64,000 nucleotides of DNA from IMGVR_UViG_3300042892_005961:62001-126000, one strand, 5' to 3'; shown: positions 1 to 60,196, numbered from the stretch's first letter. Notes: generated from the sequence alone by a model not told the origin. Numbers and translations are program-made.

Positions 1-251
1 GCATAATAACCGGATTCATATTTAATATAGTGTAATGAATATATTATTTCATCTTCTTCTAATGTTACATATTTTAATAATGTATCAACTAATATCTTAT
101 TAGTTAAATCACAATAAAATATTTCTTTTAAATGAATTACATTTTTAAAATCGTGATATGATTTTATTTTTTTATTTTCATTTCCAAAATTATAATTTTT
201 TAACATTATATCAATGTCATCATAATTAATTTTATTTTTAAATATATTCAT
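1..251 (-). CDS. Partial CDS running off the window start, probably a 2OG-Fe(II) oxygenase
   Basis: Not in the ORF track. Hand translation from ATG at 251 is open to position 1 (MNIFKNKINYDDIDIMLKNY...SLHYIKYESGYYA). It ends in the YxxG strand that precedes the HxD iron motif in P4H-like oxygenases, and it neighbours two other oxygenases. Confidence 0.5.
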   Translation of the reverse strand, partial: MNIFKNKINYDDIDIMLKNYNFGNENKKIKSYHDFKNVIHLKEIFYCDLTNKILVDTLLKYVTLEEDEIIYSLHYIKYESGYY

Positions 252-257
252 TATGTA

Positions 258-815
258 CTAAATAAGTGTTTTTGTTTTATTAATTCTATATTTGTTACCA
301 ATTGGAAATCCTATATTTTTAACTTCTTCTATATTAAGATAATTAACAATTTTTTTAAATCCATTATTATAATATAATTCTTCGTAAGAAATTGTAAAAA
401 AATCTTTATTAACATATTTTTCTTTAAATTCAGATTTTAATATCTTAAAATATTCTGTTTTTTCTTTGGTAATTGAATTTTCTGATGTTTTATAAACATA
501 TGGTAGATGCCAGTTATCCGTATTTACCGCATTTAAAAATGATTCCAATTGTTCTTGTGTATTTTCTCTATATAGTACAATAATTTTATCGGATACATTT
601 AACAATGAATTCCAATTTAAAGTAGGATAATATATTTCTTTAATACAAAGATGTTTAGTTTTATATTTATAATCTTTTGGGTCAATATTATTTTGAAACC
701 ATTTACTATTAGGATTTTCCGGTTCAAATAGTGTGGTAAAGTTTTTATTAAAATAAAACCAATTCGTAAGATTTGTTGAACCACTTCTCGGTTCTGCTAA
801 AATTGTGATAATCAT
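258..815 (-). CDS. Sulfotransferase-like protein
   Basis: N-terminal ILAEPRSGSTNL matches the 5'-phosphosulfate-binding loop (xxRSGST); LYRENTQEQLES and ISYEEL resemble later sulfotransferase motifs. Confidence 0.6.
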   Translation of the reverse strand: MIITILAEPRSGSTNLTNWFYFNKNFTTLFEPENPNSKWFQNNIDPKDYKYKTKHLCIKEIYYPTLNWNSLLNVSDKIIVLYRENTQEQLESFLNAVNTDNWHLPYVYKTSENSITKEKTEYFKILKSEFKEKYVNKDFFTISYEELYYNNGFKKIVNYLNIEEVKNIGFPIGNKYRINKTKTLI

Positions 816-833
816 ATTAATAATATTTTTATA

Positions 834-1421
834 TTAAAGTATTGTTTTTTTTTCCTTTAAAATCGGAAAATCAAATAATACATTTGCGGCAATTACAATT
901 CTATCGATAGTAGAATTAATTGAAGTATCAGGTCTATGATATACATCTGCAGGGAAAATAACAAGTTCATTTTCTTCTGGTAAAAACATCCTTTGTACAT
1001 TATCTTCTTTATCCATAAAAAATAATTTACCATCGTTCCCAGTTAAATTATTTGGCATTTGTACATAATAAGTGAATGTGCAATTGCTTTCTATTGATTT
1101 TTTTACATGTGGAGCAAACATTGTGTGGTTATGATAATGAGATTGTGTATCCTCATCCCTAGAAATAAAAATCCAAGAATATAAACAATAATCAACTTCT
1201 TCAACTTTTTTATCTTTTTTAAATAATTCTATACATCTCTTAACACCATAATTTAAAATAAAATCAATTTCTTTACATGTTAATACTATGTTAGTTTGAA
1301 TACCTGGTGTCAGATGTGATGGTTCATAATTAAATAATGATACGTTTTGATATATTTTTTTTATCAAAATTTCTTTTTCATATGGATATTTTATTTTTTC
1401 TCTATATATTTTATCAATCAT
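834..1421 (-). CDS. Putative 2OG-Fe(II) oxygenase
   Basis: HYHNH (HxH), TFTYYVQMP, DGKLFF, LVIFPADVYH and RIVIAAN give the DSBH oxygenase layout. Confidence 0.7.
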   Translation of the reverse strand: MIDKIYREKIKYPYEKEILIKKIYQNVSLFNYEPSHLTPGIQTNIVLTCKEIDFILNYGVKRCIELFKKDKKVEEVDYCLYSWIFISRDEDTQSHYHNHTMFAPHVKKSIESNCTFTYYVQMPNNLTGNDGKLFFMDKEDNVQRMFLPEENELVIFPADVYHRPDTSINSTIDRIVIAANVLFDFPILKEKKTIL

Positions 1422-2032
1422 AGTAAACTAATTATATTTTTTGTTTTAAGATTTGTTTCATAAATCCACCCACTTATAGAATATCTTTTATAATTTTTAT
1501 CAATAATTTCATCTACACAATGTAAATCTTTTATATTTTCAACATCAAAAATATTTAAACTATTAAATTTGGGTAATAATTTGTATGTAATATTATTTTT
1601 ATCATCTATGAAGTTTAAGCAACCACCTTTTTTTTCATCTGCATCTTTTGTTAAATTGTAAACAAAAGCATATTTTCTACCCAAAGATACATCGTTATGT
1701 GGAGATAAAAAATGGCCATATGTATATTTTGAGACAAATACACTCTGTGCTGTAAAAAACTTATCTTCTAACAATTTACTAATTTCTAATTCCAAATTTA
1801 ATAGAAAAAATAAGTTTTGTATAAATTCTTTGTTTTCAATACTACTATACCAATATGAAAATTCACCTTCTTTAAATTTTGATTTTTCATATTCATAAGA
1901 TTTTTTATGTTTTGAATTTGTAATCCAATCAGTTTGAGAATCGATTATATCATATACATTATTTGCAATACCATCAGATAAAAAATTTTCTATTTGTATT
2001 GGTTTTTTTTTTAATTCTTCAATATACCCCAT
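1418..2032 (-). CDS. Prolyl-4-hydroxylase-like 2OG-Fe(II) oxygenase
   Basis: KYTYGHFLSPHND (HxD), GGCLNF, distal His in LHCVDEI, and RYSISGW. Confidence 0.75.
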   Translation of the reverse strand: MGYIEELKKKPIQIENFLSDGIANNVYDIIDSQTDWITNSKHKKSYEYEKSKFKEGEFSYWYSSIENKEFIQNLFFLLNLELEISKLLEDKFFTAQSVFVSKYTYGHFLSPHNDVSLGRKYAFVYNLTKDADEKKGGCLNFIDDKNNITYKLLPKFNSLNIFDVENIKDLHCVDEIIDKNYKRYSISGWIYETNLKTKNIISLL

Positions 2033-2043
2033 AATACTTAATT

Positions 2044-2733
2044 TTATACTAAATTACCTTTTTTTACAAATCTTGATTCAAAAGTATCCCACAAAAAAGT
2101 TTTTAGTTCATTATTAACTTCTATTTTATTTTTTATTTTTTTAGTATCGTTCATTTTGGTAATTTCTAATTTTACTCCAAATTTATTGTTTATAAAATTA
2201 ATAAATTTATCAATTTCGGTTATATCAAATTCGTATGTACATTTTTCATTTTCTTTCCAATATTTTTGGGAATTAAAAATATATAAAGTACCAGGTAGAT
2301 TTTTATTTATTTTTATAAATAAACTATTATAATAGTTTTGCACTTCAGACTGGTTTTCAGAATATATAGCATTTGCAAAATTATTATTAAAATGTTTGTA
2401 TATAAATGCATTATCAACATCTTCCCAATTACAAATTAATTCATTATTATGTTGTATTGCAGAAGAATAGAAAAAAAATTCAAATGCACTTAATAATCTA
2501 TCTAACCAATTTCTTGTTATGCAAATAGTATCTTTATGACCAAAATAATCTATACAATCTTTTTTTCTACTATGAAAATGAGGGATAATTTTATTTTTAG
2601 ATTCTTCTATTAAATGTGTTCCACTTATAATTTTTTTTATATTTAAAGATGAATTATAAATTGAGTTTTCAATTGAAACCGATGCGCATCTTGGAATTGA
2701 TATCCAAATTAATTCATTGTTAATAAGAAACAT
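2044..2733 (-). CDS. Sulfotransferase family 2-like protein
   Basis: WISIPRCASVSIE resembles HIPKT(A/G)GTS; ITRNWLDRLLSAF resembles the RxPxxRxxSxY 3'-phosphate motif. Confidence 0.6.
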   Translation of the reverse strand: MFLINNELIWISIPRCASVSIENSIYNSSLNIKKIISGTHLIEESKNKIIPHFHSRKKDCIDYFGHKDTICITRNWLDRLLSAFEFFFYSSAIQHNNELICNWEDVDNAFIYKHFNNNFANAIYSENQSEVQNYYNSLFIKINKNLPGTLYIFNSQKYWKENEKCTYEFDITEIDKFINFINNKFGVKLEITKMNDTKKIKNKIEVNNELKTFLWDTFESRFVKKGNLV

Positions 2734-2744
2734 TTAAATTTAAT

Positions 2745-3008
2745 TTAGATTATATTTTTTTGTTTATTTTCTGAAAAATATTTAAAATCAACATCGTCCC
2801 ATTTTCCTTTAGGACATGCATTTTGTTTTTCAGAAAATATTTTTTTTGAAAGTGGGCAACCACAGGCCGAACAAATAGGTTTTTTAATTACATATTTTTT
2901 ATATTCACATGTACCACATATGTTAGCTCTATTTAATGCAAGTGTTTTTTGGCCTTCATTTGGATTAAAAGAAATAATCCACGCATTAATTATCTCCGCA
3001 ATTTTCAT
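2745..3008 (-). CDS. Small Cys-rich, probably metal-binding phage protein
   Basis: R..ICGTCE ... CSACGCPL ... CPKGKW pattern (CxxC, CxxCGC, CPxxKW). Confidence 0.7.
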   Translation of the reverse strand: MKIAEIINAWIISFNPNEGQKTLALNRANICGTCEYKKYVIKKPICSACGCPLSKKIFSEKQNACPKGKWDDVDFKYFSENKQKNII

Positions 3009-3025
3009 AACCTATTTAATAAAAT

Positions 3026-3103
3026 TTAAGAATTTGAAGTTACAATTAATGAACCTATTTGTGTCATTATTGTATTGATTGTAGTAATTTCTTGTGCTGT
3101 CAT
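3026..3103 (-). CDS. Unannotated 25-aa Thr/Ser-rich peptide MTAQEITTINTIMTQIGSLIVTSNS
   Basis: Hand-translated ATG(3103) to TAA(3026). It fills the gap between two co-oriented genes and has an A-rich upstream region like other starts here. Confidence 0.4.
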   Translation of the reverse strand: MTAQEITTINTIMTQIGSLIVTSNS

Positions 3104-3125
3104 ATTTTAAGTATTTTTAATTATA

Positions 3126-4634
3126 TTATAATGGTAAACAAACCAAACTTGGTGAAAAACAAGGGCCTCCACCATTGTAGGTACAATATTCATACATTTT
3201 GTCGCATCCACCAGCACCAATTCCAAATGTGTTACAAGGTTGACATTGGTAATTATGTTCAATTGCTACAAACATACCATCATTTGTTTTGGTTAGGAAT
3301 AAATGTTCATCTTGAACAGTTATTGTCCATCCGTCAAACCCATTAACACTATTCGTTATATTTGTAACGGTTTTTTCTACCACACTTACTGTTTCTAAAT
3401 CATCTGTCTGAACTAAAAGGATTTTATCACCAATTTGTAACATATCTAATGTAGTATCTTCCAAATTTAAAGCAGTCCATTTAACAATATCTCCTCTTTT
3501 TATTAGATATTGTGATATTGATGTATCTTCCCACGTTGTATTATCATCAAATGTAATAGTTGTCATTGGTGACAAAACATTTGATTTTTGTTTACCTAAA
3601 ACTACATTTGTTGAAAATGTTGAGTTTGATAAAAATTCAGTAAAATTAACACTATATCCTCTAAGTTCATCTGATTCTGTTAAATTTGGTTGATTTTCGT
3701 ATAACTTTATTGTTTTTACCACATCTCCAACTTGTAATTCTAATCCTGTCTTATATGACCCATCTGCCATCATAACCAAATCGTCATCCATTAATTTTGG
3801 TTTATTAATAGTTTGTGTACCTGAAATATATGATTTTCTGAAATTAGGATTTACTTCAAACGTTTCAGTATCGTAAGTGACATCTTCAAATAATTGAACA
3901 TTACCATGTTTAGTATATGCTCCAATTGCAATTGATTCTAATGTAGGTGGATATAATAGATTATATGAACGAACTACTGTTGCAGTATTATTTTCAATTT
4001 TTTCAGCGTTAAAATAATACTCCATTAAAAAATATTCATTAGATACATTTTGTAATACTACATCTAATTGTTCTTGAGTTGCAACTTTAAAAAATTTAGG
4101 ATATTCGTTTCTATCATATACTGGATATTTTGCTTTTAAAACAAAATTTGGGTGAACTCCATTGTCGTTAAATGTTGTAATGTTTGACACTAATTGGTTT
4201 GACTCATCCATATAAGCAAATTGACTACCAAATTCGGTAGATTGTATTAACTTTAAAAAGTTTACCTTATCTTTACAATAAGTTTCATCTACAATTGCGG
4301 TTACATCATATGCACTTCTTATGATTAAATGAGTTTCCGAATCCTCTACATATGGGATAGTAATATTATTTGCAACCTCACTAAATACATATTCTATGTT
4401 TAGTGTCACACATAATTCTTGTAATTTTTTCTCAAATTGTATTATTCCACCAATATATGTTACTTTTGTAAAATTATTAGAAGCTATAAAGTTGGTTAAT
4501 TCGTTTAAATCAAATGTGTTATCAATTTCTGTTTGAGTCATTCGATTCATACCTGCATTAGTATTTATTTCAATTGGTTTTAAATTACCTAATGAATTAT
4601 ATACTAAATCGGTCCCTAATAATACTGTTCTCAT
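3126..4634 (-). CDS. Circularly permuted ATP-grasp-like domain fused to a Hint domain and a Cys-rich C-terminal peptide
   Basis: N-terminal GTDL...PIEINTN (ATP-grasp D..ExN motif at the N-terminus), then FVLKAKYP and FLMEYY. Hint blocks: LVMMADGSYKTGLELQVGDVV, LQIGDKI, WTITVQDEHLF, IEHN. Then a 41-aa tail with 6 Cys. Confidence 0.6.
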   Translation of the reverse strand: MRTVLLGTDLVYNSLGNLKPIEINTNAGMNRMTQTEIDNTFDLNELTNFIASNNFTKVTYIGGIIQFEKKLQELCVTLNIEYVFSEVANNITIPYVEDSETHLIIRSAYDVTAIVDETYCKDKVNFLKLIQSTEFGSQFAYMDESNQLVSNITTFNDNGVHPNFVLKAKYPVYDRNEYPKFFKVATQEQLDVVLQNVSNEYFLMEYYFNAEKIENNTATVVRSYNLLYPPTLESIAIGAYTKHGNVQLFEDVTYDTETFEVNPNFRKSYISGTQTINKPKLMDDDLVMMADGSYKTGLELQVGDVVKTIKLYENQPNLTESDELRGYSVNFTEFLSNSTFSTNVVLGKQKSNVLSPMTTITFDDNTTWEDTSISQYLIKRGDIVKWTALNLEDTTLDMLQIGDKILLVQTDDLETVSVVEKTVTNITNSVNGFDGWTITVQDEHLFLTKTNDGMFVAIEHNYQCQPCNTFGIGAGGCDKMYEYCTYNGGGPCFSPSLVCLPL

Positions 4635-4652
4635 GTTTTTTTGTTATTTATA

Positions 4653-4662
4653 ATAAATACTT
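4653..4662 (-). promoter_or_regulatory. AAGTATTTAT motif (candidate late promoter)
   Basis: Exact copy of the 10-mer also found upstream of fibre genes at 45371, 52660 and 60187; 18 nt upstream of the ATG at 4634. Confidence 0.5.
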
Positions 4663-4876
4663 ATTTTTTATCTTTTAGTCCAAATTTTATCCATTTATAC
4701 CAAATTCTTTCATGAAGATAATATTGAATGGGTTTATATATCAGTTCTACCACCCCGAAAGCCGTACCAACCTTGATTGATCCACTTACCCACCATATTA
4801 TTAAAAACCCAATAAGAGTACTTACAATACGATATGAGATGGTTTTAGCAATATGTCGTTTACGTTCTACTATCAT
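4661..4876 (-). CDS. DUF2061-like small membrane protein
   Basis: RHIAKTISYRIVSTL ... YYLHERIW pattern with two hydrophobic segments; adjacent to APS kinase. Confidence 0.7.
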   Translation of the reverse strand: MIVERKRHIAKTISYRIVSTLIGFLIIWWVSGSIKVGTAFGVVELIYKPIQYYLHERIWYKWIKFGLKDKK

Positions 4877-5259
4877 TTGTCATTCATATCAGGATATTCT
4901 ATAATATCTCCGTTTGAGTCAATATACCCGTTTCTGATACTTGTACCACTAATTTTAGCAACTTCTTCAGGTGGTTCGTGGTAAATAACATCATACCCAA
5001 CTCCTCTACCATAATTAATACTCTCAATATCAGGAATAATGGATATGTTAATTCTATGTGAATTTTCCTTAAAAAACGGTTCGTCCGATAAATCCATCAT
5101 TACTTGTTGAGCCGTTTTAGGGTTATTCTCATCTGTCTCTACATTTCTAATAGCCACCCACACATTCTTCCCCTTTTCTAATTGTTGATTAAGTAACCAT
5201 TCGTGGCCCTTGTGCCAATTCTGCCAGCGTCCTACATACATTGCATATTTCTTACTCAT
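4873..5259 (-). CDS. HIGH-superfamily nucleotidyltransferase (cytidyltransferase-like); candidate minimal ATP sulfurylase
   Basis: GRWQNWHKGH (HxGH) and C-terminal ISGTSIR; overlaps the APS kinase stop codon by 4 nt. Confidence 0.7.
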   Translation of the reverse strand: MSKKYAMYVGRWQNWHKGHEWLLNQQLEKGKNVWVAIRNVETDENNPKTAQQVMMDLSDEPFFKENSHRINISIIPDIESINYGRGVGYDVIYHEPPEEVAKISGTSIRNGYIDSNGDIIEYPDMNDK

Positions 5260-5693
5260 AGTGTTAATTTTTTTAATATTTCATAATAAGAATCTACTTC
5301 GGTTTTATCCGTTGTATCCAAATCTATAAAGTTTTCGGTAGGTGGTTCGTAGTTCTCTACGTGAAACTGATTTCTACCTCTATCCTCTGTCGTGCGTACA
5401 TAAACCTCAATAACATCTTCTCTATTCTTAAAGTCCTCTCTTTGGTCTTTATATGGGGAAACTAAGGATACCAAGACCGTAAACCCCTTTTTATTCAAAA
5501 ATTGAGCGATGTCTTGTGCTCTTTCAATATTTTTTTTCCTTCCCACCTCAGAATAGTCCTTATTTTGGAAAATGTCCCTTAAATCGTCCCCATCTATAAT
5601 AATAGTATTCTCCTTACCAAAATGGGTTAGGAGGTTGTTTACTAACGTAGTTTTACCAGATGCGGGTTGTCCTGTGAACCAATATATTGACAT
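5256..5693 (-). CDS. cysC: Adenylylsulfate (APS) kinase
   Basis: WFTGQPASGKTT P-loop, DGDDLR, VSLVSPY, YEPP. Confidence 0.9.
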   Translation of the reverse strand: MSIYWFTGQPASGKTTLVNNLLTHFGKENTIIIDGDDLRDIFQNKDYSEVGRKKNIERAQDIAQFLNKKGFTVLVSLVSPYKDQREDFKNREDVIEVYVRTTEDRGRNQFHVENYEPPTENFIDLDTTDKTEVDSYYEILKKLTL

Positions 5694-5731: not shown

Positions 5732-6447
5732 TAATTCTCAATAAATTTTTCATTTAATGGATCATTTTTTATTCTTTCCATTATTTTATTCGCAATAAAT
5801 TTATTTCCTTCTTCATTTGCGTGTCCCTGTTCATCCCTATTGAACCTTTTTTCTTTAAAAAGATCAATTAAACCAGTAAATAATGTTCTAATATGTAAAC
5901 CAAAATCAACAAATCTACTTAAATCAATTTTTTTATATATCTCCAATTCCGTTATACTATAATCAAATTGCATATAATTGAAAAAATAATAAGGAATGTC
6001 ATGATTTATTAAAAATTGTTGTAAAGAATATATATAATGAATTGTATGCATACTGCCCATCGGTTCATACTTTAAATGGTATTCTGTGTTATCATATAAA
6101 GTTACATATACTGGTTTTTCATCCATTAAACAATGTTCTCGTCTATTTGGTCCCGACCATTGTATTATAACAAAATCAGGTTTTTTACCTGTACTCATTA
6201 ATTTACATATGGATTCCATTGATTGGTGAAATATCTTATCATTACCGACACCAGATATCGCATCATTAACTAAAAAGTCTTTATCTAATGCCTTTATTTC
6301 ACTTAAAGTCAAAGGTAAAATATATTGATTATGATAATAGTTAAATGATTTGGTAAATCCACTCATAAGTTGATTAGGCCAAACATAACTCTCTTTGAGT
6401 GTTGGGTGATCGTCACTATGTGAACAACCATTTGTATATATTAACAT
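5713..6447 (-). CDS. SGNH-hydrolase/acyltransferase-like protein
   Basis: TNGCSHS, NDAISGVGN, and C-terminal GHANEEG catalytic-His motif. Confidence 0.55.
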   Translation of the reverse strand: MLIYTNGCSHSDDHPTLKESYVWPNQLMSGFTKSFNYYHNQYILPLTLSEIKALDKDFLVNDAISGVGNDKIFHQSMESICKLMSTGKKPDFVIIQWSGPNRREHCLMDEKPVYVTLYDNTEYHLKYEPMGSMHTIHYIYSLQQFLINHDIPYYFFNYMQFDYSITELEIYKKIDLSRFVDFGLHIRTLFTGLIDLFKEKRFNRDEQGHANEEGNKFIANKIMERIKNDPLNEKFIENYFSKSL

Positions 6448-6450
6448 AGA

Positions 6451-6567
6451 TTAGTGGTTATAAATAAACGGATCTCTTTTACGTAATTCTTCTAATTTCT
6501 TTTTAAATTCCTTCTTTCTTTTCTTGTCAGCAAAGTATTTCTTCACCCAATTGATTAGTTTTTTCAT
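6451..6567 (-). CDS. Small basic peptide, 38 aa (MKKLINWVKKYFADKKRKKEFKKKLEELRKRDPFIYNH)
   Basis: Hand-translated, below the ORF track cutoff. Starts at a TAATG overlap with the upstream stop and fills the gap exactly. The LRKRDPFIY ending resembles a small conserved phage family (from memory). Confidence 0.65.
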   Translation of the reverse strand: MKKLINWVKKYFADKKRKKEFKKKLEELRKRDPFIYNH

Positions 6568-7259
6568 TATATTATATTTTTAAGTTTATCATTTAATAAG
6601 TATTCGTAAAACATTCTGTTCATTTTTTCACTCCAATGATCGTCGCCAAAAATACCACGTTCACCATTTGAATTAATATAATCATCTTGGAGGGTCTCCC
6701 AAAAATTTATATTTTTTTCCAAGATTTTCCTATCCTCAATGTTACTATTTTCATAGTTTAAATTGTCCCACGAAAAAACATACACATAAGATGGTGTGAT
6801 TTTAATTAAACTATCAATTATTTCAAGATAATTTGAATGTGAAGATTCAGTTGAATTAAAAATCTGACACATTTTTATTAATTCTTCATTTAAATAATCA
6901 AAACCATCTATGTTTTCATTACCTTTTGACTCCGCACCAATAAACTTATTTACAAATTTATAACCATTAACATCAAATTTGTACCAATTATCTTTTTTTA
7001 AAGGTAACCTTGTTCTGTGAAATGCCGGTAAACAAATTATTAAAATGTCATCTTGTTTTAAATTGGGGATTGATATTATCCATTTATCAATTATTGTTTG
7101 TACATCTCTACTTGGTTGTCCGTCCACAATAACGTTATAATTTAATACATTTTCTTCTATTAATCTCGTCCACGTATGTAATTTATTTATTGAAATTAAT
7201 TCATATAATTTGTCCGTTTTCATAACAAAACTATCTCCAATAATTAAAAATCTTTTCAT
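6567..7259 (-). CDS. SGNH-like protein
   Basis: IIGDSF at the N-terminus and GDDHWS near the C-terminus. Confidence 0.55.
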   Translation of the reverse strand: MKRFLIIGDSFVMKTDKLYELISINKLHTWTRLIEENVLNYNVIVDGQPSRDVQTIIDKWIISIPNLKQDDILIICLPAFHRTRLPLKKDNWYKFDVNGYKFVNKFIGAESKGNENIDGFDYLNEELIKMCQIFNSTESSHSNYLEIIDSLIKITPSYVYVFSWDNLNYENSNIEDRKILEKNINFWETLQDDYINSNGERGIFGDDHWSEKMNRMFYEYLLNDKLKNII

Positions 7260-7262
7260 ATT

Positions 7263-8930
7263 TTAATTTTTATACATAACATAATTACCCATTACTAATA
7301 TATCCATATCAGTATCAAAGAAAGTGTCGACGGCATCTTTAGGTGTCAACACCATTGTCTTATCTTTAACATTGAATGAGGTATTCAGTAAAATTGGATA
7401 ACCACTTAATTTTTCAAATTCATTTAGTAAATCATGAATTACAGTGTGTTTATAAACTGTTTGAACTCTCGCACTACCGTCTACATGAGTAACAGCCGGT
7501 AATTTATCTCGATATTCTTCCTTTACTTTAACAACTTGATTCATATAAGGAACATCATCCGTCATCTCGAAGAATTGATCTTGTTTCTCTTTGGTTACCA
7601 TTGGGGCAAATGGTCTAAAACCTTCTCTTTTCTTAATTACCTTATTAATTCTATCTTTCATATTTGGTAATGTTGGATTTGCTAATATTGATCTATTACC
7701 CAACGCTCTTGATCCGAATTCTATATGACCATTAAACCATCCAACAACCTTACCTTCAAATAATTTTTGTGCAATGTGTGTTCTTAATTTATTTTCAGAT
7801 TCAAACTTTTTAAAGTTCTTGGTGCCAATTGCTCGTCTAATATCATCTAAATAATATTCAGGACCTAAAAATGGATTTCTTGTAATTTTACTTCTTACTT
7901 TACGTTCTTTAACTAAGTAATGAACCACAGCACCTATTGCCGACCCTGCGTCAGATGGTGCGGGTGGAATCCAAAGATGATTGAAGTGTGACTTATCAAT
8001 AATTTTACCGTTAGCAGTTCCGTTATAAGCACAACCACCACTTAATGTTAAGTTTGGGCTTTTACTTACGTGTCTAATTGATTTGATAATCTCAAACAAT
8101 ACCTCTTCATATCTTAATTGAACCGCAGCTGCCAAATCTTTATGTGTTTGTTCTAATGTTTCTTCAGGTAATCTTTGTGGAACACTTAATAGTTCCGCAA
8201 GTTTCTCATTAAACATAGACTTATCGGTCTTATTCCAACAAAATACATCCATATTACACACTAACTTACCACTTTTAAATGAAATCAAATCACGTACCTC
8301 TTTAATATACTTTTGAGGGTCACCGTAAGATGCTAATCCCATTACCTTATATTCACCTTCATTTGGTCTAAACCCTAAATAAGAGGTTAATGCGGAGTAA
8401 TAAAGACCCATTGAATGTGGATACTTTGCAAGTGAACTATATTTGATTCCATTGTAATCGGCAACTCCTAATGACACCGTATCAATCTCACCCACACCGT
8501 CAACTGATAAACAAGTTGATTCCTCAAAATGTGATGTATAATGTGCATAATACTGATGAGCTTCATGATGTGTTGAATAAAACACCGTGGAACAAATCTC
8601 TTTTAATTTCTTATCAATTTCTTTTACGTTATTACGTATTTTAAAATAGGACTTTAACGAATATATTGGATTCTTAAACCATTGAGGTTTAATGTTTTCC
8701 ATTACTCGTTGGTATTTTAATTGTGGATCTTCATAATAACAAACCGCCTGTAAGTTCTTAGGTGTAATCTTATATTGTTTATAGATATATTCCAACGCTT
8801 TGGTTGGGAACGAATCATCATGTTTAATACCTGTGAATTTTTCTTCTTCACAAGCGAATATCAATTGGTTATCTCTGAATAAACAAACAGATGAATCGTG
8901 ATAAAATGCGGATATACCTATTATATACAT
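7263..8930 (-). CDS. Carbamoyltransferase (NodU/CmcH/TobZ family)
   Basis: GISAFYHDSS, HHEAH, DGVGE, EGEYKVMGLASYG, LSGGCAYN, PAPSDAGSAIGA, EFGSRALGNRSILA, RPFAP, HVDGSARVQTV, LLNTSFN. Confidence 0.95.
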   Translation of the reverse strand: MYIIGISAFYHDSSVCLFRDNQLIFACEEEKFTGIKHDDSFPTKALEYIYKQYKITPKNLQAVCYYEDPQLKYQRVMENIKPQWFKNPIYSLKSYFKIRNNVKEIDKKLKEICSTVFYSTHHEAHQYYAHYTSHFEESTCLSVDGVGEIDTVSLGVADYNGIKYSSLAKYPHSMGLYYSALTSYLGFRPNEGEYKVMGLASYGDPQKYIKEVRDLISFKSGKLVCNMDVFCWNKTDKSMFNEKLAELLSVPQRLPEETLEQTHKDLAAAVQLRYEEVLFEIIKSIRHVSKSPNLTLSGGCAYNGTANGKIIDKSHFNHLWIPPAPSDAGSAIGAVVHYLVKERKVRSKITRNPFLGPEYYLDDIRRAIGTKNFKKFESENKLRTHIAQKLFEGKVVGWFNGHIEFGSRALGNRSILANPTLPNMKDRINKVIKKREGFRPFAPMVTKEKQDQFFEMTDDVPYMNQVVKVKEEYRDKLPAVTHVDGSARVQTVYKHTVIHDLLNEFEKLSGYPILLNTSFNVKDKTMVLTPKDAVDTFFDTDMDILVMGNYVMYKN

Positions 8931-8933
8931 TAC

Positions 8934-9683
8934 TTACTTTTTATACAAAACCCTTTTTAATTGTTCGGGTCCTATGTGTCTTATTGGGTTATGAACTCCT
9001 AAAGGGTTTGGTGAAAATACATCCTCCATACTAAACTTCATTGCGGTTTCAATATCAGCAACTCCGTTCCCCTCCATATACTTCATAAAATAAATATCCT
9101 CTAAAATATCTTCAGTAATTGGATTATTTTCACAAATTTCAATCATTTTACTAACTGTTCTTAATGATAATCCCCCGTTTCCAACCCATTGATTTTCTTT
9201 GGGTTTTCTCCACGGTGCACCTACATAATCATATTCTAAAAAATCATCTATTCCGCTCCTTAATAATAAGGAATCTGTTTGGAAGATTAAAGCCTTAGTC
9301 CCTTTTACTTGTCTCCAAAACTCAACACTTTCCATATATCTACTATGTTCAGTATGATTAAAGTTATCAATTCCAATATTTGTTAAAACCACATTACCTA
9401 AACTTAACTTAATGTTTTCGACCAATTCTTTATTTTGATTACCGTGAAATATTTGTAACCCCCATTTGATAGGTGAATTTGTTTCATTTAAATAAAACAT
9501 TGTTGATTTAATAACGGTTAACAGATCGGGATGAACTCTGGGTTCTATAATGACCGCATAATAATCTGTTTCCGTTGAGATATGTGGGATATATCCAACG
9601 TGTTTCACATATTCTTCGGTTAGGAACTGTTCCCAAATCTTTTTAGATTCTTCGTTTGATTTCGTCATATATGTGTTTTGCAA
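8934..9683 (-). CDS. DUF5672-like putative glycosyltransferase
   Basis: IIEPRVHP, LIFQTDS, YDYVGAPW, VGNGGLSLR, EDIYF. The real start may be the second Met. Confidence 0.65.
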   Translation of the reverse strand: MQNTYMTKSNEESKKIWEQFLTEEYVKHVGYIPHISTETDYYAVIIEPRVHPDLLTVIKSTMFYLNETNSPIKWGLQIFHGNQNKELVENIKLSLGNVVLTNIGIDNFNHTEHSRYMESVEFWRQVKGTKALIFQTDSLLLRSGIDDFLEYDYVGAPWRKPKENQWVGNGGLSLRTVSKMIEICENNPITEDILEDIYFMKYMEGNGVADIETAMKFSMEDVFSPNPLGVHNPIRHIGPEQLKRVLYKK

Positions 9684-10266
9684 TTATTTTATACCCGTTT
9701 AGATTTGGATGGTAATCTCCTTCATAGAAGTTCTTTTCATCGTTCCATACACTCCTACTACCATATTCCCACACACCGATATTATTTTTAATTTCGTATT
9801 TTCTTAATACATCAGATACGCACCCATCTGGATTTATAAAATATTCAGGTAATTTTTTTGTATCAACATCCTCTTCTCTAAATGACGGATAGAAAGAATT
9901 AAAATAAAAATGTTTATACCCTTCTAATAGTTCTTCCATTAATAGATATATCTCAACCACGTTGTGAATATCTTTTGATTTATAACGATATGGATACGAT
10001 AGCATTATAATTACTATATCGTCTTTGTTTATAAATCCATTCTCAACCGTTTCTTTAAGATCTTTTAAAATATATTCATTACCATAACCACAAACACCTA
10101 AATTGACATATTCACACTTCAATTTATCAGATACCCATCTTGGCCAAGAGTTCATGTCTCTCAGTTTTTGGATAAACATATGTGGAAATGGTTCTTCTTT
10201 ATATTTTACATCTGTTTCAATTCCATGTCCTGCAGTCCAACTATCACCAAACGTAATTAATCTCAT
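9643..10266 (-). CDS. SGNH-like protein
   Basis: TFGDSWTAG, NLGVCGYGN, DYHPNLNGY. Confidence 0.65.
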   Translation of the reverse strand: MRLITFGDSWTAGHGIETDVKYKEEPFPHMFIQKLRDMNSWPRWVSDKLKCEYVNLGVCGYGNEYILKDLKETVENGFINKDDIVIIMLSYPYRYKSKDIHNVVEIYLLMEELLEGYKHFYFNSFYPSFREEDVDTKKLPEYFINPDGCVSDVLRKYEIKNNIGVWEYGSRSVWNDEKNFYEGDYHPNLNGYKIIAKHIYDEIKRRI

Positions 10267-11006
10267 TATATATTTTTTATGATATGGTTATAGAAATAGT
10301 CCGCTTGATTTTTGTGTCCGAACTCTCCCATATGGTCATCAATTACAACACCATTAGTTTCTTCAACAATTCTTGCCTTAAGAACTCCATCAAAGAACAT
10401 TGGTAAGTTTAAATAACCCAACAAGTTTGTTTTGCTACTTTCATTATCTCTTACAACAATACATTTTTTATCATCCTCTTGAATATTATGTTGATTGAAT
10501 ATTGTCTCGTCGGCCGTCCAATAAAAATTATGTGCACCGATGTTATTTAAATATACATTTATAAATCTCATCCATTGGTTTACTTCTAACGCCCATAAAG
10601 GATGAGATCTATTATACATTATTTCTTCTATTGTTCTTTTTGAAAATCCAGTTCCACCAAAATTATTTTCCGAAACTAATATTTGTGTAAAAATATTTTC
10701 ATCTAAATTTACAGATATAAATCTTGTAAGGTTTGTCCATCCAAACACCACAATATCATCTTGTTTTATTAACTCACATACATTAATGAACTGATTGAAA
10801 ATGTTGTAATTAGATGAACCCCCAACGGCACAATTCATTACCTTACAGTTTAATCTTTCCCCAAGTATGGTCGGCCAAACTGGTGGTAAATTACCTCCTC
10901 TCCATTTTTTATATTTATCAAAATCATTTTCAAATGGAAAAAATATTCCATCAATTGGGTCGTACTCCGCAGTAAAACTACATCCAAATGTCCAAAGTGT
11001 TCTCAT
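10266..11006 (-). CDS. SGNH-like protein
   Basis: TFGCSFTA, NCAVGGSSN, DDHMGEFG. Confidence 0.6.
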   Translation of the reverse strand: MRTLWTFGCSFTAEYDPIDGIFFPFENDFDKYKKWRGGNLPPVWPTILGERLNCKVMNCAVGGSSNYNIFNQFINVCELIKQDDIVVFGWTNLTRFISVNLDENIFTQILVSENNFGGTGFSKRTIEEIMYNRSHPLWALEVNQWMRFINVYLNNIGAHNFYWTADETIFNQHNIQEDDKKCIVVRDNESSKTNLLGYLNLPMFFDGVLKARIVEETNGVVIDDHMGEFGHKNQADYFYNHIIKNI

Positions 11007-12319
11007 TATATTAAACTTTCAAAAAATTGATAATCTTTTTCAACAATATTCAACATGTTCCATACTTTTTGTTTATTGTCTTCAAATCTTTGTTTATTGT
11101 TCTTATAGAACTCTTTAACTTGGTCTTGTATTCCGTCTAATCTTTTTATTTCTTCAACAAACATTTCTAATCTTCTCATTTGATTTGGTTCGTTGTCATA
11201 TGAATGATTAATAATATCATCAAAAAAATCAAAATTATATTTCTCTTTCATTGTTTTAATATGATATTGTGTTGCGAGTATCATTGGTAATTGATAATAA
11301 AAAAATGGTCTGTAAGATTTCTCACTAATATGTGTTACGAATAGGTCATCAAAAAATTTAGATTCGGTGACAATATTAATATATGAGTTTTCGTAGTTCA
11401 TTCCAAATTCGGGTATTCTCATCCACGAAGGAAAACCTTCTATGTTTGGTTCTTTAAATAAATTAAACCAATCTTTATTTTTTTCCATATCACTTCTCTT
11501 GAACTTAATATCGTTGAAAAAAATTATTTCATCTTTGAAATATTCTTTTTGTTCTCTTGTAAAAATTTTATCATAATAATGTCCTATTGGAAAACAATCG
11601 TATGGTGGTACCAAAGACCAATTAATTTTTTCTAATAGTCCTTCTTTTTTCAAAAAACATAACAAAGCGTATCTGTGATGTTTTGGTGTTTTATTAAAAC
11701 ACATAAACATTTTACCTTCCTTGTCATCAACCCAATTACATCCTCCTGCATTTGTCAATGAAAAATTAGACGAATGTGCAATGAAATGTAACGTATGTAC
11801 ATTTATTCCACTATTGTGTTTAATTTTAAGGTCATTCAACCTTTCATTATTATTAATTACGTAAAATTGTTTTGGGTCTAAATTTCTATGTTCAAGATAT
11901 TCTAATAATCTAATAAAACCGCTTTCATAATCCGGTTCGTGTTCTGTTATTATAATTACTTTTAAATTTTTACATTTTTGTAAACATTCAATAACCTCTT
12001 CACTTAATGGTGATTTTTCAAACTTCTCTGTGGCCTTTTCTTCATTCTCAACAAATAAATTTATTATATCGATATTACCGTGTGCAATTGGGTAATAAAA
12101 ATTTAAATCAGGTCTAAAATAAACTTCACTTAAATTGTGTGATTTAATTTCAAATTTATTTTGCTCCTTTGTTTCTATTTGAAAATGTAATAATAGATGT
12201 TGGAAATTAAATGTGAACCTATCTCCTCCATTGTATTTGAAGGTATTGGTTTCACTATCCCATCTATCATAACAAAGATTTAATATCTTGTTTTTTTCCT
12301 CCATAATAAATTGTGTCAT
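11006..12319 (-). CDS. GT-B glycosyltransferase, GT10 (fucosyltransferase)-like
   Basis: FMCFNKTPKHHR and YINIVTES...HISEKSYRPF...LP (GT10-type xEN/ES...TEK motif), DHSYD. Probable start at the second Met (MEEKNK). Confidence 0.55.
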   Translation of the reverse strand: MTQFIMEEKNKILNLCYDRWDSETNTFKYNGGDRFTFNFQHLLLHFQIETKEQNKFEIKSHNLSEVYFRPDLNFYYPIAHGNIDIINLFVENEEKATEKFEKSPLSEEVIECLQKCKNLKVIIITEHEPDYESGFIRLLEYLEHRNLDPKQFYVINNNERLNDLKIKHNSGINVHTLHFIAHSSNFSLTNAGGCNWVDDKEGKMFMCFNKTPKHHRYALLCFLKKEGLLEKINWSLVPPYDCFPIGHYYDKIFTREQKEYFKDEIIFFNDIKFKRSDMEKNKDWFNLFKEPNIEGFPSWMRIPEFGMNYENSYINIVTESKFFDDLFVTHISEKSYRPFFYYQLPMILATQYHIKTMKEKYNFDFFDDIINHSYDNEPNQMRRLEMFVEEIKRLDGIQDQVKEFYKNNKQRFEDNKQKVWNMLNIVEKDYQFFESLI

Positions 12320-13442
12320 TTAATTTTCTTTCTCTCCACGGATCCACAACAATACTACCTTCAGGAAATATTGTTTCATTAAAAATACCTCTATGTCCTA
12401 ATAAATAAACCGCCGGTTCTTCAATCTTATCAAAATCAACATTTTCTTTGTAAGTAAAGTTAACATAATAACCAACTAGTACTGAATATGAACCTTCCGT
12501 AAATTCCACACCTGGTTTATAACTTTTACCCATAATAATAATTGGTAAATTGTGTTGTCTTGCTTGTCTAACTAATTTATCGGCTAAGTTTTTCGCTTGA
12601 ACCTCTCTTGTTTTCATTATTGAATCAAATAAATCATATCCCAATCCAAATCTTTGTGAAAGATATCTTAATGCGATATTATCTCTTGGGTGACACGAAC
12701 CTCCGTCACCCATACCCGCTTTCATATATGCGGGACCTGTGATTCTATTGGTACTTCTTTCTAATGCTCCCGTTACTACATCTGTATTCATACTACCGTT
12801 TTTCTCGGCGATGTCTTGAATCATGTTAACCAAAGTTAATTTTGCTGATATAAACGTATTGTAAAATATTTTTATACCCTCCGCTTCATCCCAATTACCA
12901 ATTTCATATCTTGTGCCGTGTGTTACTATTGTATCATAAAAATCTTTCAATATTTTTGCATCCGTTGTTGTTGATCCGTCCTCAGTTCCAATTATAATCA
13001 TTTCAGGATTGACCATATCATGTTTAACGGTACCCATAGCAATTAGATATGGATTATAAATAAATCTATAATTTCTAACTAATGAATAAAATTGACTTCT
13101 TGTTGTACCGGGTAGTACTGTTGATATTAGTACCACCAATTGTGATTTATTTGTATACTCATTTAACTCATTTAAAATACCTTGTACAATTGTATAGTCA
13201 AAATCTTTTGGTGGTAATTGTGCCATTGGTTGACTACCATCATATGCTGGATCATGTGGTGTTGGTACCGCAATGAATATTATTTCTCTATCTTTACAAA
13301 CATCCTCTAAAGATGTTGTCATTGTAAATTTAGTATCGGTGACTAATTTTACATCATAACCTAACACATCGTGACCGGCTTCGTACATTACTTCAGCCGC
13401 ATCTTTACCTAATTTACCAATTCCAATAAATCCTACTTTCAT
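12267..13442 (-). CDS. ugd: UDP-glucose/GDP-mannose dehydrogenase family protein
   Basis: GFIGIGKLG, IAVPTP, STVLPGT, YNPYL, KIFYNTF, GDGGSCHPRD (catalytic Cys), GKSYKP. Confidence 0.85.
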   Translation of the reverse strand: MKVGFIGIGKLGKDAAEVMYEAGHDVLGYDVKLVTDTKFTMTTSLEDVCKDREIIFIAVPTPHDPAYDGSQPMAQLPPKDFDYTIVQGILNELNEYTNKSQLVVLISTVLPGTTRSQFYSLVRNYRFIYNPYLIAMGTVKHDMVNPEMIIIGTEDGSTTTDAKILKDFYDTIVTHGTRYEIGNWDEAEGIKIFYNTFISAKLTLVNMIQDIAEKNGSMNTDVVTGALERSTNRITGPAYMKAGMGDGGSCHPRDNIALRYLSQRFGLGYDLFDSIMKTREVQAKNLADKLVRQARQHNLPIIIMGKSYKPGVEFTEGSYSVLVGYYVNFTYKENVDFDKIEEPAVYLLGHRGIFNETIFPEGSIVVDPWRERKLNDTIYYGGKKQDIKSLL

Positions 13443-36787: not shown

Positions 36788-36789
36788 AA

Positions 36790-60188: not shown

Positions 60189-60196
60189 AAATACTT
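60187..60196 (-). promoter_or_regulatory. AAGTATTTAT motif (candidate late promoter)
   Basis: Exact 10-mer between a terminator and the first structural gene. Confidence 0.55.

Follow-up and report, generated by a model that had tools for sequence, protein, structure and literature searches.

Within a window of 64,000 nucleotides (IMGVR_UViG_3300042892_005961, 62001–126000), we analyzed the run of genes that occupies the first 5,693 positions and lies entirely on the minus strand (Table 1). Besides a 502-residue protein with an intein-like (Hint) domain and a hypervariable, Cys-rich tail, the run encodes an APS kinase, a nucleotidyltransferase, a DUF2061 protein, a 25-residue micro-protein, a CxxC protein, two sulfotransferase-like proteins, and three 2OG-Fe(II) oxygenases. 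All genes listed by the initial annotation are real and its description of a single co-oriented run was borne out, but its readings of the ATP-grasp portion, the Hint portion, and the 25-residue ORF had to be revised. This co-orientation is not due to chance, because the same arrangement is found in ~80 independent viral contigs.

Table 1 Genes, domains, and other features of the locus, with positions counted from the first letter of the window
Feature	Position	Strand	Remarks
APS kinase, short form (145 aa)	5256..5693	minus	PF01583 E 9e-18, above cut-off
HIGH-motif nucleotidyltransferase (128 aa)	4873..5259	minus	Weak CTP_transf_like, PPAT, and NMNAT matches
DUF2061 membrane protein (71 aa)	4661..4876	minus	PF09834 E 2e-15; last gene of the conserved upstream flank
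502-aa protein gene	4634-3126	minus	No Pfam match; two-domain reading confirmed by structure
Circularly permuted ATP-grasp ligase domain, residues 1-273	3816..4634	minus	Domain model pLDDT 92.7
Hint (intein-like) domain, residues 280-461	3252..3797	minus	Structural match and conserved residues
Hypervariable 41-aa tail, residues 462-502	3129..3251	minus	6 Cys; presumed released peptide
Micro-protein gene (25 aa)	3026..3103	minus	Motif IG.LI...NS; predicted ligase-domain partner
CxxC zinc-ribbon-like protein (87 aa; family c1)	2745..3008	minus	Core cassette member; ends KNII
Sulfotransfer_2-like protein ST229 (229 aa; family c2)	2044..2733	minus	Core cassette member; ends NLV
2OG-Fe(II) oxygenase OG204 (204 aa; family c11)	1418..2032	minus	PF13661 E 1e-17, PF13640 E 8e-15; ends SLL
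2OG-Fe(II) oxygenase (195 aa; family c7)	834..1421	minus	PF13640 E 2e-5, below cut-off; PHROG 81 E 3e-11; ends KTIL
Sulfotransferase-like protein ST185 (185 aa; family c3)	258..815	minus	PRSGST loop and RE...S motif; ends KTLI
P4H-like 2OG-Fe(II) oxygenase gene, 5′ part (158 aa)	1..251	minus	HxD and distal His; ends KNII

A conserved core cassette that moves as a block

This type of cassette is widespread among viruses: the Hint gene, the micro-ORF, the CxxC gene, and a Sulfotransfer_2-like gene co-occur in ~80 viral loci. The quartet has been duplicated together elsewhere in the same genome, and the same partners are found, in altered gene order, in distant relatives. Moreover, the block as a whole has been transferred as a single unit between phages that otherwise resemble each other, as seen in locus L003, which shares 97% nucleotide identity from window position 4645 to −834 and has a different upstream flank. 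Part of the synteny reflects inheritance, since all loci come from one broad phage lineage. Conservation of the gene set as a neighborhood had been proposed as a test; it held for the core quartet, but not for the individual oxygenases, which vary, nor for the APS kinase, the nucleotidyltransferase, and the DUF2061 gene, which form a conserved flank rather than part of the cassette block. The latter three adjoin the cassette in only 25 of 51 non-redundant loci, and the DUF2061 protein reaches up to 100% amino acid identity where the Hint protein is only 45% identical. Other loci add enzymes of a peptide type, namely SET-domain proteins, radical SAM/SPASM enzymes, and a Trp halogenase.

Within the flank, the APS kinase—also present in the distant loci L094, L096, and L098—scored 65 bits against PF01583 (cut-off 21); it is shorter than usual and its 66 bits against apsK lie below the NCBIfam equivalog cut-off. 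It presumably supplies PAPS. PHROG 10255 covers both this protein and the adjacent nucleotidyltransferase, of which L094 carries a near-identical copy and which is possibly an ATP sulfurylase.

The 502-residue protein carries a permuted ligase domain

According to structural modeling, the 502-residue protein, the presumed precursor, contains two domains, a permuted ATP-grasp amide ligase of the glutathione-synthetase/GspS type and a Hint domain; a 41-residue, six-Cys tail follows. The gene is also contained in lake-water RNA libraries at 95–99% identity, although contigs from such libraries may include DNA.

The ATP-grasp call of the initial annotation can be refined to a circularly permuted ligase domain of the glutathione-synthetase/glutathionylspermidine-synthetase type. 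While the domain had no sequence-level match to any solved structure, its top 38 Foldseek matches were all eukaryotic-type glutathione synthetase (GS), GspS, YgiC/YjfC, or 3k1t (E-values down to 4e-6 for the GS/GspS clade), and residues 1–273 aligned with ATP-grasp enzymes at a modest structural Z of ~8, which is at the caution line of the tool. GS and GspS types align from residue 1, classical ATP-grasp enzymes only from residue 55. Likewise, the phage domain shares with eukaryotic-type GS, GspS, and YgiC/YjfC the permuted fold with the Mg-binding E-x-N hairpin at its N terminus, its likeness to RimK, TTL, and LysX/LysW being more distant. The putative Mg/ATP ligands are conserved (Glu22 and Asn24 invariant, Asp9 at least 90%), and the spacing of D9/E22/N24 fits what we take to be the corresponding D318/E330/N332 of GspS. 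Enzymes of the GS/GspS and RimK/TTL/LysX types couple an amine to a peptide or protein whose C-terminal carboxylate they have activated. The phage domain differs from GS and GspS in its minimal size (273 residues), in its fusion to a Hint domain, and in a predicted dependence on a 25-residue partner. It would form one ATP-dependent amide bond that involves the peptide or a tagged C terminus.

A Hint domain that retains the residues for C-terminal cleavage

Residues 275–461 matched more than 20 inteins, BIL domains, and hedgehog with Z-scores of 10–13.4 (VIA-align; 13.4 to BIL2, 12.8 to the NpuDnaB intein, 11.6 to hedgehog) and a Foldseek E-value of 1e-8. The earlier Hint call is thereby confirmed with respect to fold, but the N-terminal nucleophile is absent. 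In the structural alignment, residue 280 corresponds to intein residue 1 and residue 461 to the terminal intein Asn; Lys280, Glu459, and Asn461 do not vary across 119 sequences and His460 is conserved to at least 90%, so that Lys occupies the position at which inteins carry Cys, Ser, or Thr. Distant relatives have no Cys at the ligase–Hint junction either. By our reading, the domain would also have a Ser in place of the block-B His (T371-x-x-S374, with S374 invariant, placed by reading the sequence alignment rather than by residue-level structural alignment), while block F and the terminal His-Asn are kept. At the +1 position, where splicing inteins have a nucleophile, we found Val, Tyr, Ala, Leu, Asn, Phe, and others, with Cys in only one of 120 sequences.

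Given that the N-terminal nucleophile is absent but Glu-His-Asn461 is kept, C-terminal self-cleavage is the only activity to be expected; with Lys at position 1 and, as read here, Ser at block B, only the Asn-cyclization half of the chemistry could remain. The penultimate His and terminal Asn predict such cleavage, and most distant relatives that carry the Hint domain retain this HN pair. Asn461 would cyclize, cut the Asn461–Tyr462 bond, and thereby free the tail with a new N terminus. C-terminal cleavage by cyclization of the last intein residue is possible without the earlier splicing steps (PMC4031507), and BIL domains, which have no C-flanking nucleophile, are cleaving rather than splicing Hint domains (PMC4031507 and references therein). 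BIL domains and the Tetrahymena BUBL BIL2 are also the best structural matches (Z 13.4 and 12.7); they retain an N-terminal Cys or Ser, however, where the phage domain has Lys and, on the above reading, Ser for the block-B His.

The tail is hypervariable and rich in Cys

Downstream of Asn461, the tails of all 120 homologs are unique, usually contain six or eight Cys, and have an even Cys count in 112 cases. Among 70 short tails of the wider superfamily, 66 contain 6 to 12 Cys, always in even number. Both dN and dS are raised in the tail, and its predicted structure has a pLDDT below 50. As for the origin of this diversity, we considered the tail as a target of a diversity-generating retroelement and rejected it, having found neither an RVT_1 domain in the 211 kb record (63% complete) nor a second copy of the tail DNA.

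In six relatives, a peptide of 27–35 residues with 6–8 Cys lies between the HN pair and a second Hint domain that starts with Cys1; the two of these scanned (P0157 and P0186) matched Pfam Intein_splicing, PT-HINT, or Hint at this position. The presence of a second, canonical Hint domain after the peptide in some distant relatives argues for peptide excision. Another relative terminates in a self-cleaving Peptidase_S74 module.

Cross-linking as in graspetides, with which the initial annotation had compared the locus, is unlikely because the tails are poor in acidic residues (3.0% Asp and 2.2% Glu over 120 tails) and the ligase falls into the glutathione-synthetase/GspS clade; graspetides combine a core rich in Thr/Ser/Lys and Asp/Glu with an MdnB/C-type ligase, a combination that these proteins do not show. 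The matches of the N-terminal domain are GS/GspS types and not classical RimK-like ATP-grasp enzymes. The acid-flanked Tyr pair in DKMYEY, previously put forward as a plausible sulfation site, shows no conservation outside the subfamily to which the window belongs, and even within it the second Tyr is variable. With respect to composition, Pro-rich tails accompany the c6 oxygenase, the sole link of this kind that we found and essentially confined to one clade.

Two small conserved partners

The 25-residue ORF had been listed as part of the run and is indeed a conserved gene: of 55 non-redundant related loci, only L060 lacks an intact copy, and the gene is also found in the paralogous cassette of the same genome and in distant relatives. 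For the micro-protein and the ligase domain, we obtained a predicted complex score of 0.92, compared to 0.00 for the best control. When the tool was calibrated, 58 of 80 solved complexes and 2 of 110 mismatched pairs scored this high, a benchmark that applies only roughly here. The micro-protein may thus be a subunit or an activator of the ligase domain.

The CxxC protein gave weak DUF6171 and double-zinc-ribbon matches. Of 81 loci with the Hint gene, 79 also encode a CxxC protein; in two distant relatives its gene lies upstream instead of downstream. Residues C34, C46, C49, C51, P52, K56, C65, and W70 are invariant in the family, and C31 is at least 90% conserved.

Sulfotransferase-like proteins and oxygenases

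The 5′-phosphosulfate loop and the 3′-phosphate R...S motif are conserved in both sulfotransferase-like families, although neither ST229 nor ST185 matched a Pfam family above cut-off. ST229 contains the motifs IPRCAS and TRNWLDRLLSAF. Of the 49 non-redundant loci with sufficient flanking sequence, 40 carry a member of its family, in which R74 and H54 are invariant and P14, A17, S18, S20, H52, and S82 at least 90% conserved. In the same genome, the second Hint gene is followed by a paralog of ST229. ST185, whose PRSGST loop is N-terminal, gave a weak NodH match spanning both PAPS motifs; its family (invariant residues R10, G12, S13, R83, and S92) is present in 23 of 49 loci. The only Pfam families matched by at least three family members were sulfotransferase families: Sulfotransfer_1 (3 of 33) and Sulfotransfer_3, the commonest match of family c3 (5 of 21). 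In the ESM Atlas, look-alikes of the sulfotransferase-like proteins carry Sulfotransfer_1 or Sulfotransfer_2.

The oxygenases are less constant. OG204 is limited to the closest relatives (eight loci), and the c7 oxygenase is a variable cassette member (22 loci). The ORF of the third oxygenase (genome positions 62251–61775) extends 225 bases past the window start, has a tblastn match to 2OG family c0, and is part of the mobile cassette.

A common C-terminal tag on cassette enzymes

Nearly all cassette enzymes, regardless of fold, end in a common tag such as KTLI—a new observation. The tag is enriched in the window's own genome (Fisher p = 1.4e-9); it is found on 80–100% of the members of twelve unrelated enzyme families, as opposed to 0–25% in other families of these loci, and its codons and stop codons differ between genes. 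The tag may recruit tailoring enzymes. Before or after its release, the tail would be modified by such tagged enzymes. Here, these would be the sulfotransferases, with PAPS provided by the APS kinase of the phage, and the P4H-like oxygenases; cassettes elsewhere would contribute radical SAM, SET, and methyltransferase enzymes.

A proposed self-processing peptide precursor and its alternatives

The evidence supports the view that the gene set functions as a unit centered on a ribosomal peptide precursor, which bears out part of the originally proposed phage peptide-maturation pathway; hydroxylation and sulfation of the peptide would be predicted steps. Of the features of RiPP gene clusters, precursor-like architecture and conserved clustering are seen, and peptide modification is what we infer. 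Our preferred reading, to which we lean with moderate confidence, is that of a mobile and diversifying gene cassette, carried by a large phage from lake water, that makes a ribosomal Cys-rich peptide from a self-processing precursor. Its six or eight Cys would form disulfides outside the cell or bind metal; counting against this reading, a Cys-rich peptide would not form disulfides in the cytoplasm. The product would act at the interface with a host or competitor, under diversifying selection.

Among known systems, borosins are enzyme-fused RiPP precursors in which a methyltransferase is fused to its own core peptide. As in borosins, the presumed phage core peptide is a C-terminal tail of the enzyme, which takes the place of a leader peptide; however, the phage enzyme is an ATP-grasp ligase, its cores are hypervariable and rich in Cys, and release would be autocatalytic via the Hint domain rather than by a separate peptidase. 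Conotoxins and cyclotides offer an analogy only, in that a conserved pro-region precedes a hypervariable mature peptide with six or eight Cys, and hydroxyproline and sulfotyrosine occur in conotoxins. They share no homology with the phage system, which is viral and cytoplasmic, with processing that would be autocatalytic.

The strongest of the alternatives, albeit an improbable one, is a glycan-tailoring island: the sulfotransferases, oxygenases, GDSL-like proteins, carbamoyltransferase, and PAPS supply would modify a polysaccharide or a virion or host glycan, with the ATP-grasp-Hint gene merely residing in the same hyperplastic region or the ligase domain amidating a uronic acid. Just upstream lie genes for UDP-glucose dehydrogenase (UGDH), an epimerase/dehydratase, a carbamoyltransferase, DUF5672, and GDSL-like proteins; UGDH and several other enzymes of this sugar-nucleotide cluster bear the same C-terminal tag, and in L091 UGDH directly adjoins the CxxC and Hint genes. 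Most enzymes of the Sulfotransfer_2 family are carbohydrate sulfotransferases, and the ESM Atlas look-alikes of ST229 include this carbohydrate type and the capsular NKWYS family. Taken with the tagged sugar cluster, this means that the cassette enzymes may serve a glycan. Yet the second quartet lies in a region without sugar genes, the mobile block starts exactly at the Hint gene, and the SET-domain, SPASM radical SAM, and Trp-halogenase neighbors are enzymes of a peptide type.

Second among the alternatives, and likewise improbable, is a virion adhesin, in which the 502-residue protein or its tail would be a host-recognition element with a hypervariable tip, the CxxC protein its assembly chaperone in the manner of tail-fiber assembly proteins, and the Hint domain structural only. 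A conserved N terminus and a hypervariable C terminus followed by a small conserved gene recall tail fibers; in several loci, only 3–6 kb separate the cassette from the tail sheath gene downstream of it, the Peptidase_S74 module of one relative is an intramolecular chaperone typical of fibers, and other relatives carry BACON domains. Besides, a free peptide released at lysis would be diluted in lake water. Against this, the N-terminal domain is enzyme-like with invariant Mg-site residues, Glu-His-Asn is kept across the close family and HN in most distant relatives, the second canonical Hint domain of relatives points to excision, and the 502-residue protein has no match to structural PHROGs.

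Release by a HINT peptidase that directly precedes a variable C-terminal domain is an established mechanism (Zhang et al. 2012, PMC3482391), and the PT-HINT modules of bacterial polymorphic toxins likewise place a Hint-fold autopeptidase immediately N-terminal to the recombining variable domain. Least probable, nonetheless, is a polymorphic-toxin-like effector, with the Hint domain releasing a small Cys-rich toxin or host-takeover peptide, the CxxC protein as immunity protein or antidote, and unrelated neighboring enzymes: such an arrangement defines many polymorphic toxins, viral relatives have PT-HINT Pfam matches, and cassettes are swapped by recombination, but the N terminus is an ATP-grasp ligase rather than a trafficking, secretion, or filament module, the 21–60-residue Cys-rich cargo is far smaller than the folded domains of known toxins, the first Hint domain has no position-1 nucleophile, the Sulfotransfer_2 gene is co-duplicated with the Hint gene, and the cassette has no variable immunity gene, its CxxC protein being conserved and tagged like the enzymes whereas immunity proteins co-vary with their toxins.

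Returning to the self-processing precursor, our literature search found no description of a viral peptide-making system of this kind. A more far-reaching and less probable reading is that the cassette represents a new viral class of ribosomal natural products, in which an enzyme-tethered, hypervariable Cys-rich peptide would be excised by intein-like chemistry, through Asn cyclization on its N-terminal side and, in some relatives, a thioester-forming second Hint domain on its C-terminal side. A two-subunit ATP-grasp ligase would then cyclize the peptide or join it to another C terminus, and unrelated tailoring enzymes would be recruited, or themselves ligated, via their C-terminal tag. If this is true, shared tags like KTLI would turn the logic of leader peptides around.

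A Hint domain predicted to be competent for C-terminal cleavage only

The AlphaFold model of the 502-aa protein, built on 119 homologs, had a mean pLDDT of 81.6, with residues 461–502 falling below 50; modelled alone, the N-terminal domain reached 92.7. Residues 275–461 adopted a Hint fold, matching the Tetrahymena BIL2 domain (Z 13.4), the NpuDnaB intein (12.8), a Clostridium BIL domain (12.7), and hedgehog (11.6), and aligning intein residue 1 with model residue 280 and the terminal Asn with residue 461. Searching solved structures by sequence, with the 502-aa family or its Hint part as query, gave no match. Position 1 of the Hint domain is an invariant Lys, the presumed block B reads T-x-x-S, not T-x-x-H, in our alignment, and the residue following Asn461 is almost never a nucleophile; on these sequence grounds, we consider splicing and N-terminal thioester formation excluded. 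His444, located in a block-F-like HLFLT stretch, and His460 are each at least 90% conserved, and Glu459 and Asn461 are invariant. Even when the earlier steps are missing, cyclisation of the last residue can cut the C-terminal junction (PMC4031507), and the Hint domain would make a one-way cut at the bond between Asn461 and Tyr462.

The structural matches of residues 1–273 were ATP-grasp enzymes only. Its 38 best Foldseek matches were eukaryotic-type glutathione synthetases, glutathionylspermidine/trypanothione synthetases, YgiC/YjfC, and the 3k1t protein; the Z of about 8 is modest, and the uniformity of the matches is the stronger argument. Alignments began at residue 1 for the GS/GspS-type matches and at about residue 55 for RimK, LysX/ArgX, Ddl, PurK, and TTLs, which is what a circular permutation moving the Mg-binding E-x-N hairpin to the N-terminus would give in the modelled domain. 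Consistent with such a permuted hairpin, Glu22 and Asn24 are invariant and Asp9 is at least 90% conserved.

Hypervariable, cysteine-rich tails

No two of the 120 best homologs had the same sequence following HN (120/120 unique); the median length was 38 residues and the composition 17% Cys, 12% Gly, and 8% Pro. An even number of Cys was present in 112 of these tails, with six in 56 and eight in 50. In close relatives, the tail exceeded the body several-fold in both dN and dS (omega 0.1–0.5), and identity along the Hint gene formed a mosaic. Because dS was raised along with dN and identity came in mosaic blocks, this variation points to recombination, apparently combined with relaxed or diversifying selection. 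We rejected a diversity-generating retroelement as its source, as neither a reverse transcriptase nor a template repeat was found in the record, which is 63% complete.

A Tyr adjoins an acidic residue in 57 of the 120 tails. The initial annotation had proposed ligation, citing graspetides, and sulfation, with DKMYEY as a plausible site. Graspetide chemistry was not borne out, given tails poor in acidic residues and a ligase from another clade, and DKMYEY, conserved in the window's subfamily only, did not hold up as a general sulfation site. Tails accompanied by the c6 oxygenase contained more Pro (6.0 vs 3.0 without it, p = 3e-5). However, c6 is essentially a single clade on the tree and its c6-less members are also Pro-rich, so this association is no independent evidence, and we rejected a link between tail composition and enzyme content.

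Tandem-Hint relatives flank a peptide on both sides

A word-indexed search returned 653 full-length homologs, all unnamed, and an exhaustive search with a ligase-domain profile yielded 302 clusters at 50% identity, the domain being N-terminal in all; the family numbers no fewer than 653 protein clusters at the 90% identity level and 302 at the 50% level. In the best 150 of the 302, one Hint domain was followed by a short tail in 70 (66 of these tails with 6, 8, 10, or 12 Cys), and a second Hint domain followed the first in 12. Six of these 12 tandem-Hint proteins carried a peptide of 27–35 residues with 6–8 Cys exactly between HN and the Cys opening the second Hint domain. In P0157 and P0186, the two of the six that were scanned, and in two tandem-Hint relatives, the second domain matched Pfam Intein_splicing, PT-HINT, or Hint; one further relative had a C-terminal self-cleaving Peptidase_S74 module. 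As judged from sequence, a peptide between two putatively self-cleaving modules would be hard to explain unless it is excised, and these relatives are the strongest indirect argument that the peptide is also released from the single-Hint form in the window.

No homolog of the Hint protein was found by tblastn in 50,697 GenBank phage records, where CxxC-like matches in a Rhizobium phage and a Halomonas phage had an uninformative context. In the literature searched, neither DUF6171 nor the presence of a Hint domain in such a RiPP precursor was mentioned, which is not proof that the family is undescribed.

A micro-protein predicted to bind the ligase domain

The 25-aa micro-ORF begins 22 bases past the stop codon of the 502-aa gene. 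Of 55 non-redundant loci, L060 alone lacked an intact copy; in the others it measured 24–30 aa, with a conserved I-G-x-L-I motif and terminal N-S. Its median dN/dS was 0.39, and it was also present in the second, paralogous cassette of the genome. In distant relatives, the micro-ORF was longer (37–49 aa), keeping an amphipathic stretch while its last residues varied. A three-chain prediction placed the micro-protein on the ligase domain with a score of 0.92, compared with 0.00 for the best of three controls. In calibration, 58 of 80 solved complexes attained such a score, as did 2 of 110 mismatched pairs; this benchmark is only roughly valid here, given our own alignments and a very short partner. 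The predicted contacts involve nearly the whole micro-protein and ligase residues 6–23, 114–135, and 221–241. Binding to the ligase domain is supported by this model, and we read the micro-protein as a likely ligase subunit or activator rather than a substrate.

The cassette moves as a block

All genes listed in the initial annotation were present, all on the minus strand. Pfam support was strong for APS kinase, DUF2061, and one oxygenase, weak for the second oxygenase and the CxxC protein, and absent for the 502-aa protein and either sulfotransferase-like protein. Among 80 IMG/VR loci with a homolog (81 when the paralog is included), tblastn located the CxxC gene on the same strand in 79 of the 81. 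In the 49 non-redundant loci whose downstream sequence reached 4.5 kb or more, we counted at least one P4H-like oxygenase in 42, a Sulfotransfer_2-like gene in 40, radical SAM in 25, and an ST185-like gene in 23; the oxygenase OG204 occurred in eight loci only. The second cassette comprises a Hint gene, micro-ORF, CxxC gene, and Sulfotransfer_2-like gene, with no sugar genes found nearby. Distant relatives had the same partners in altered order, CxxC lying upstream of the Hint gene in L091 and L098, and one second-Hint relative was accompanied by two sulfotransferases, a SET domain, and an oxygenase, without CxxC. In a single case, that of protein P0197, the Hint precursor has a Trp-rich tail (four Trp), and a flavin-dependent Trp halogenase is encoded two genes upstream.

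At the DNA level, flanks were 86–94% identical between this genome and several loci, with identity lost inside the Hint gene and regained about 1.45 kb past the window start. L003, a related locus with a different upstream flank, was 97% identical over exactly window 4645 to −834, a stretch that opens at the Hint start codon and extends across two more oxygenase genes. From these breaks and the L003 match, the mobile unit is the Hint gene and all that is downstream of it. A recombination breakpoint lies within the Hint gene. The ligase-domain half was shared, at 74–82% nucleotide identity, with loci in which the Hint and tail half showed no relationship in DNA sequence; new Hint-tail-enzyme sets are therefore grafted onto a conserved ligase domain.

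APS kinase, nucleotidyltransferase, and DUF2061 form a conserved flank, adjacent in 25 of 51 non-redundant loci and up to 100% identical at the protein level where the Hint protein was 45% identical. Since sulfotransferases recur in the cassettes, it is plausible that the flank genes supply them with PAPS.

Sulfotransferases and oxygenases

Both sulfotransferase-like families keep a phosphosulfate-loop motif and an R...S motif, and in the ST229 family R74 and H54 are invariant and other motif positions at least 90% conserved. Pfam matches common to at least three members of these families were to sulfotransferase families only, profile searches gave weak matches, confined to precisely these motifs, to heparan 2-O-sulfotransferase and NodH, and ESM Atlas look-alikes carried Sulfotransfer_1 or Sulfotransfer_2. 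Family c6 (177 aa), located between micro-ORF and CxxC in 28 loci, is by profile comparison a divergent P4H-like oxygenase (hhalign probability 90%, E 1.5e-6).

A common C-terminal tag on cassette enzymes

Nearly all accessory enzymes, regardless of fold, share a C-terminal tag of two hydrophobic residues after Lys or Asn and a small polar residue (for example KTLI, KNII, NKLI, KTIL, or KSLL). In this genome, it was found on 10 of 11 consecutive cassette genes after the micro-ORF vs 13 of 171 other ORFs (Fisher p = 1.4e-9). Counted over unique sequences across loci, the tag was present in Sulfotransfer_2-like (50/50), ST185-like (27/28), radical SAM (28/29), c6 (18/19), CxxC (47/50), GDSL-like (24/26), and c0 oxygenase (66/82) proteins, and in 92–100% of smaller families (c7 and c11 oxygenases, c10, c21, methyltransferase, SET), as against 0–25% of members of other gene families at these loci, tail sheath included. 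It was kept in distant relatives, and several enzymes of the upstream sugar cluster were also tagged. We rejected a DNA-level explanation: codons, stop codons, and downstream DNA all differ, and the tag is therefore selected at the protein level.

The tag ties unrelated enzymes into one system, its candidate roles being a docking peptide, a substrate end for a C-terminal-carboxylate ligase, or a sorting or turnover signal. No receptor was identified in the record; a PDZ or S41 peptidase was rejected, neither being encoded there.

Coordinates of the locus and of related features
Feature	Window	Genome bases	Remark
502-aa gene	4634-3126		minus strand
Asn461 codon	3252-3254		
Tyr462 codon	3249-3251		
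Loss of flank identity; recombination breakpoint	3709-3909		near these positions
Oxygenase OG204	1418-2032		204 aa
Third oxygenase gene	251 (start)		extends past window start
Second cassette		28793-26141	
Tagged genes	258-3008; 6567-28177	59269-65008	
Tagged genes beyond cassette	6567-7259		
	11006-12319		
	12267-13442		UDP-glucose dehydrogenase
	15773-16588		
	22801-23634		
	24638-25936		
	27440-28177		
GDSL-like or p246-like copies	9643-11006	6334-9303; 36313-36945; 59269-61162	
Radical-SAM matches	25939-27393		484 aa
	28161-30983		940 aa
Collagen-like tail-fibre matches	41818-45309		1163 aa
	52729-58671		1980 aa
IscA/HesB-like and IscU/NifU-like genes		G000:C1:30728-31460	outside window
Gp23-like stretch		G000:C1:43437-43616	L087

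The source phage and its expression

The window covers bases 62001–126000 of a 211 kb IMG/VR virus record, estimated to be 63% complete. Its DNA has a G+C content of 16–35% and was found in 16 lake or freshwater DNA runs and, in part, in four lake metatranscriptome libraries. Because radical-SAM and tail-fibre genes lie further along the window and related loci have a tail sheath gene, the source appears to be a large tailed phage. Placing it by its major capsid protein was rejected, the only candidate being a 98-aa Gp23-like open frame; the capsid gene may sit in the missing 37% of the genome. The sole match to the T4 major capsid family Gp23 was a 60-residue stretch of that frame, which adjoins a glycosyltransferase 42% identical to one in Flavobacterium phage immuto.

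Further genes were observed in the genome. Two proteins have radical-SAM matches in PHROGs, and radical SAM and SPASM genes also lie inside many related cassettes and might bear on the Cys-rich peptides, for instance by forming thioethers; the phage's radical SAM enzymes may be served by putative IscA/HesB-like and IscU/NifU-like Fe-S scaffolds encoded about 2 kb from the second cassette. Two very large proteins show repeated matches to collagen-like tail-fibre families, and a GDSL-like or p246-like family has at least eight copies across the genome, several within or next to cassettes.

Contigs of the four metatranscriptome libraries matched parts of the locus at 95–99% identity, with the best coverage over the Hint gene (window 3350–4640) and one contig joining the CxxC start, the micro-ORF, and the 3′ end of the Hint gene. 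This is consistent with transcription and no more, as such libraries can contain DNA. Promoter and terminator scans showed no excess over shuffled sequence. RNA-library contigs of high depth (39–92) touched the window, at 675 and 2165, over only 21 bases either side of a skipped 1489-base stretch, and 21 unrelated bases intervened; most likely, they stem from another organism or a chance match, not from a spliced form.

Discussion

Of the proposal that this is a RiPP-like maturation locus, a cassette centred on a peptide stands, while a graspetide cluster does not; how the peptide is modified and what it does biologically are what we infer. What most sets the cassette apart had not figured in the initial annotation: a Hint domain that would cut one way only, a predicted micro-protein partner, mobility as a block, and a tag common to the enzymes. 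Being small and autonomous, the parts—a Hint domain for C-terminal cleavage, a ligase partner of 25 aa, and a tag of four residues—make the claims directly testable and are potentially useful as tools. If the model holds, self-excising precursors of diversifying Cys-rich peptides form a large family in lake phages, a natural counterpart of engineered two-intein systems for peptide excision and cyclisation. RiPP biology would then gain a release mechanism, with a Hint domain replacing the leader peptidase, and possibly a recruitment mechanism in the shared C-terminal tag, and arms races between phages and their hosts or competitors would have a new arena.
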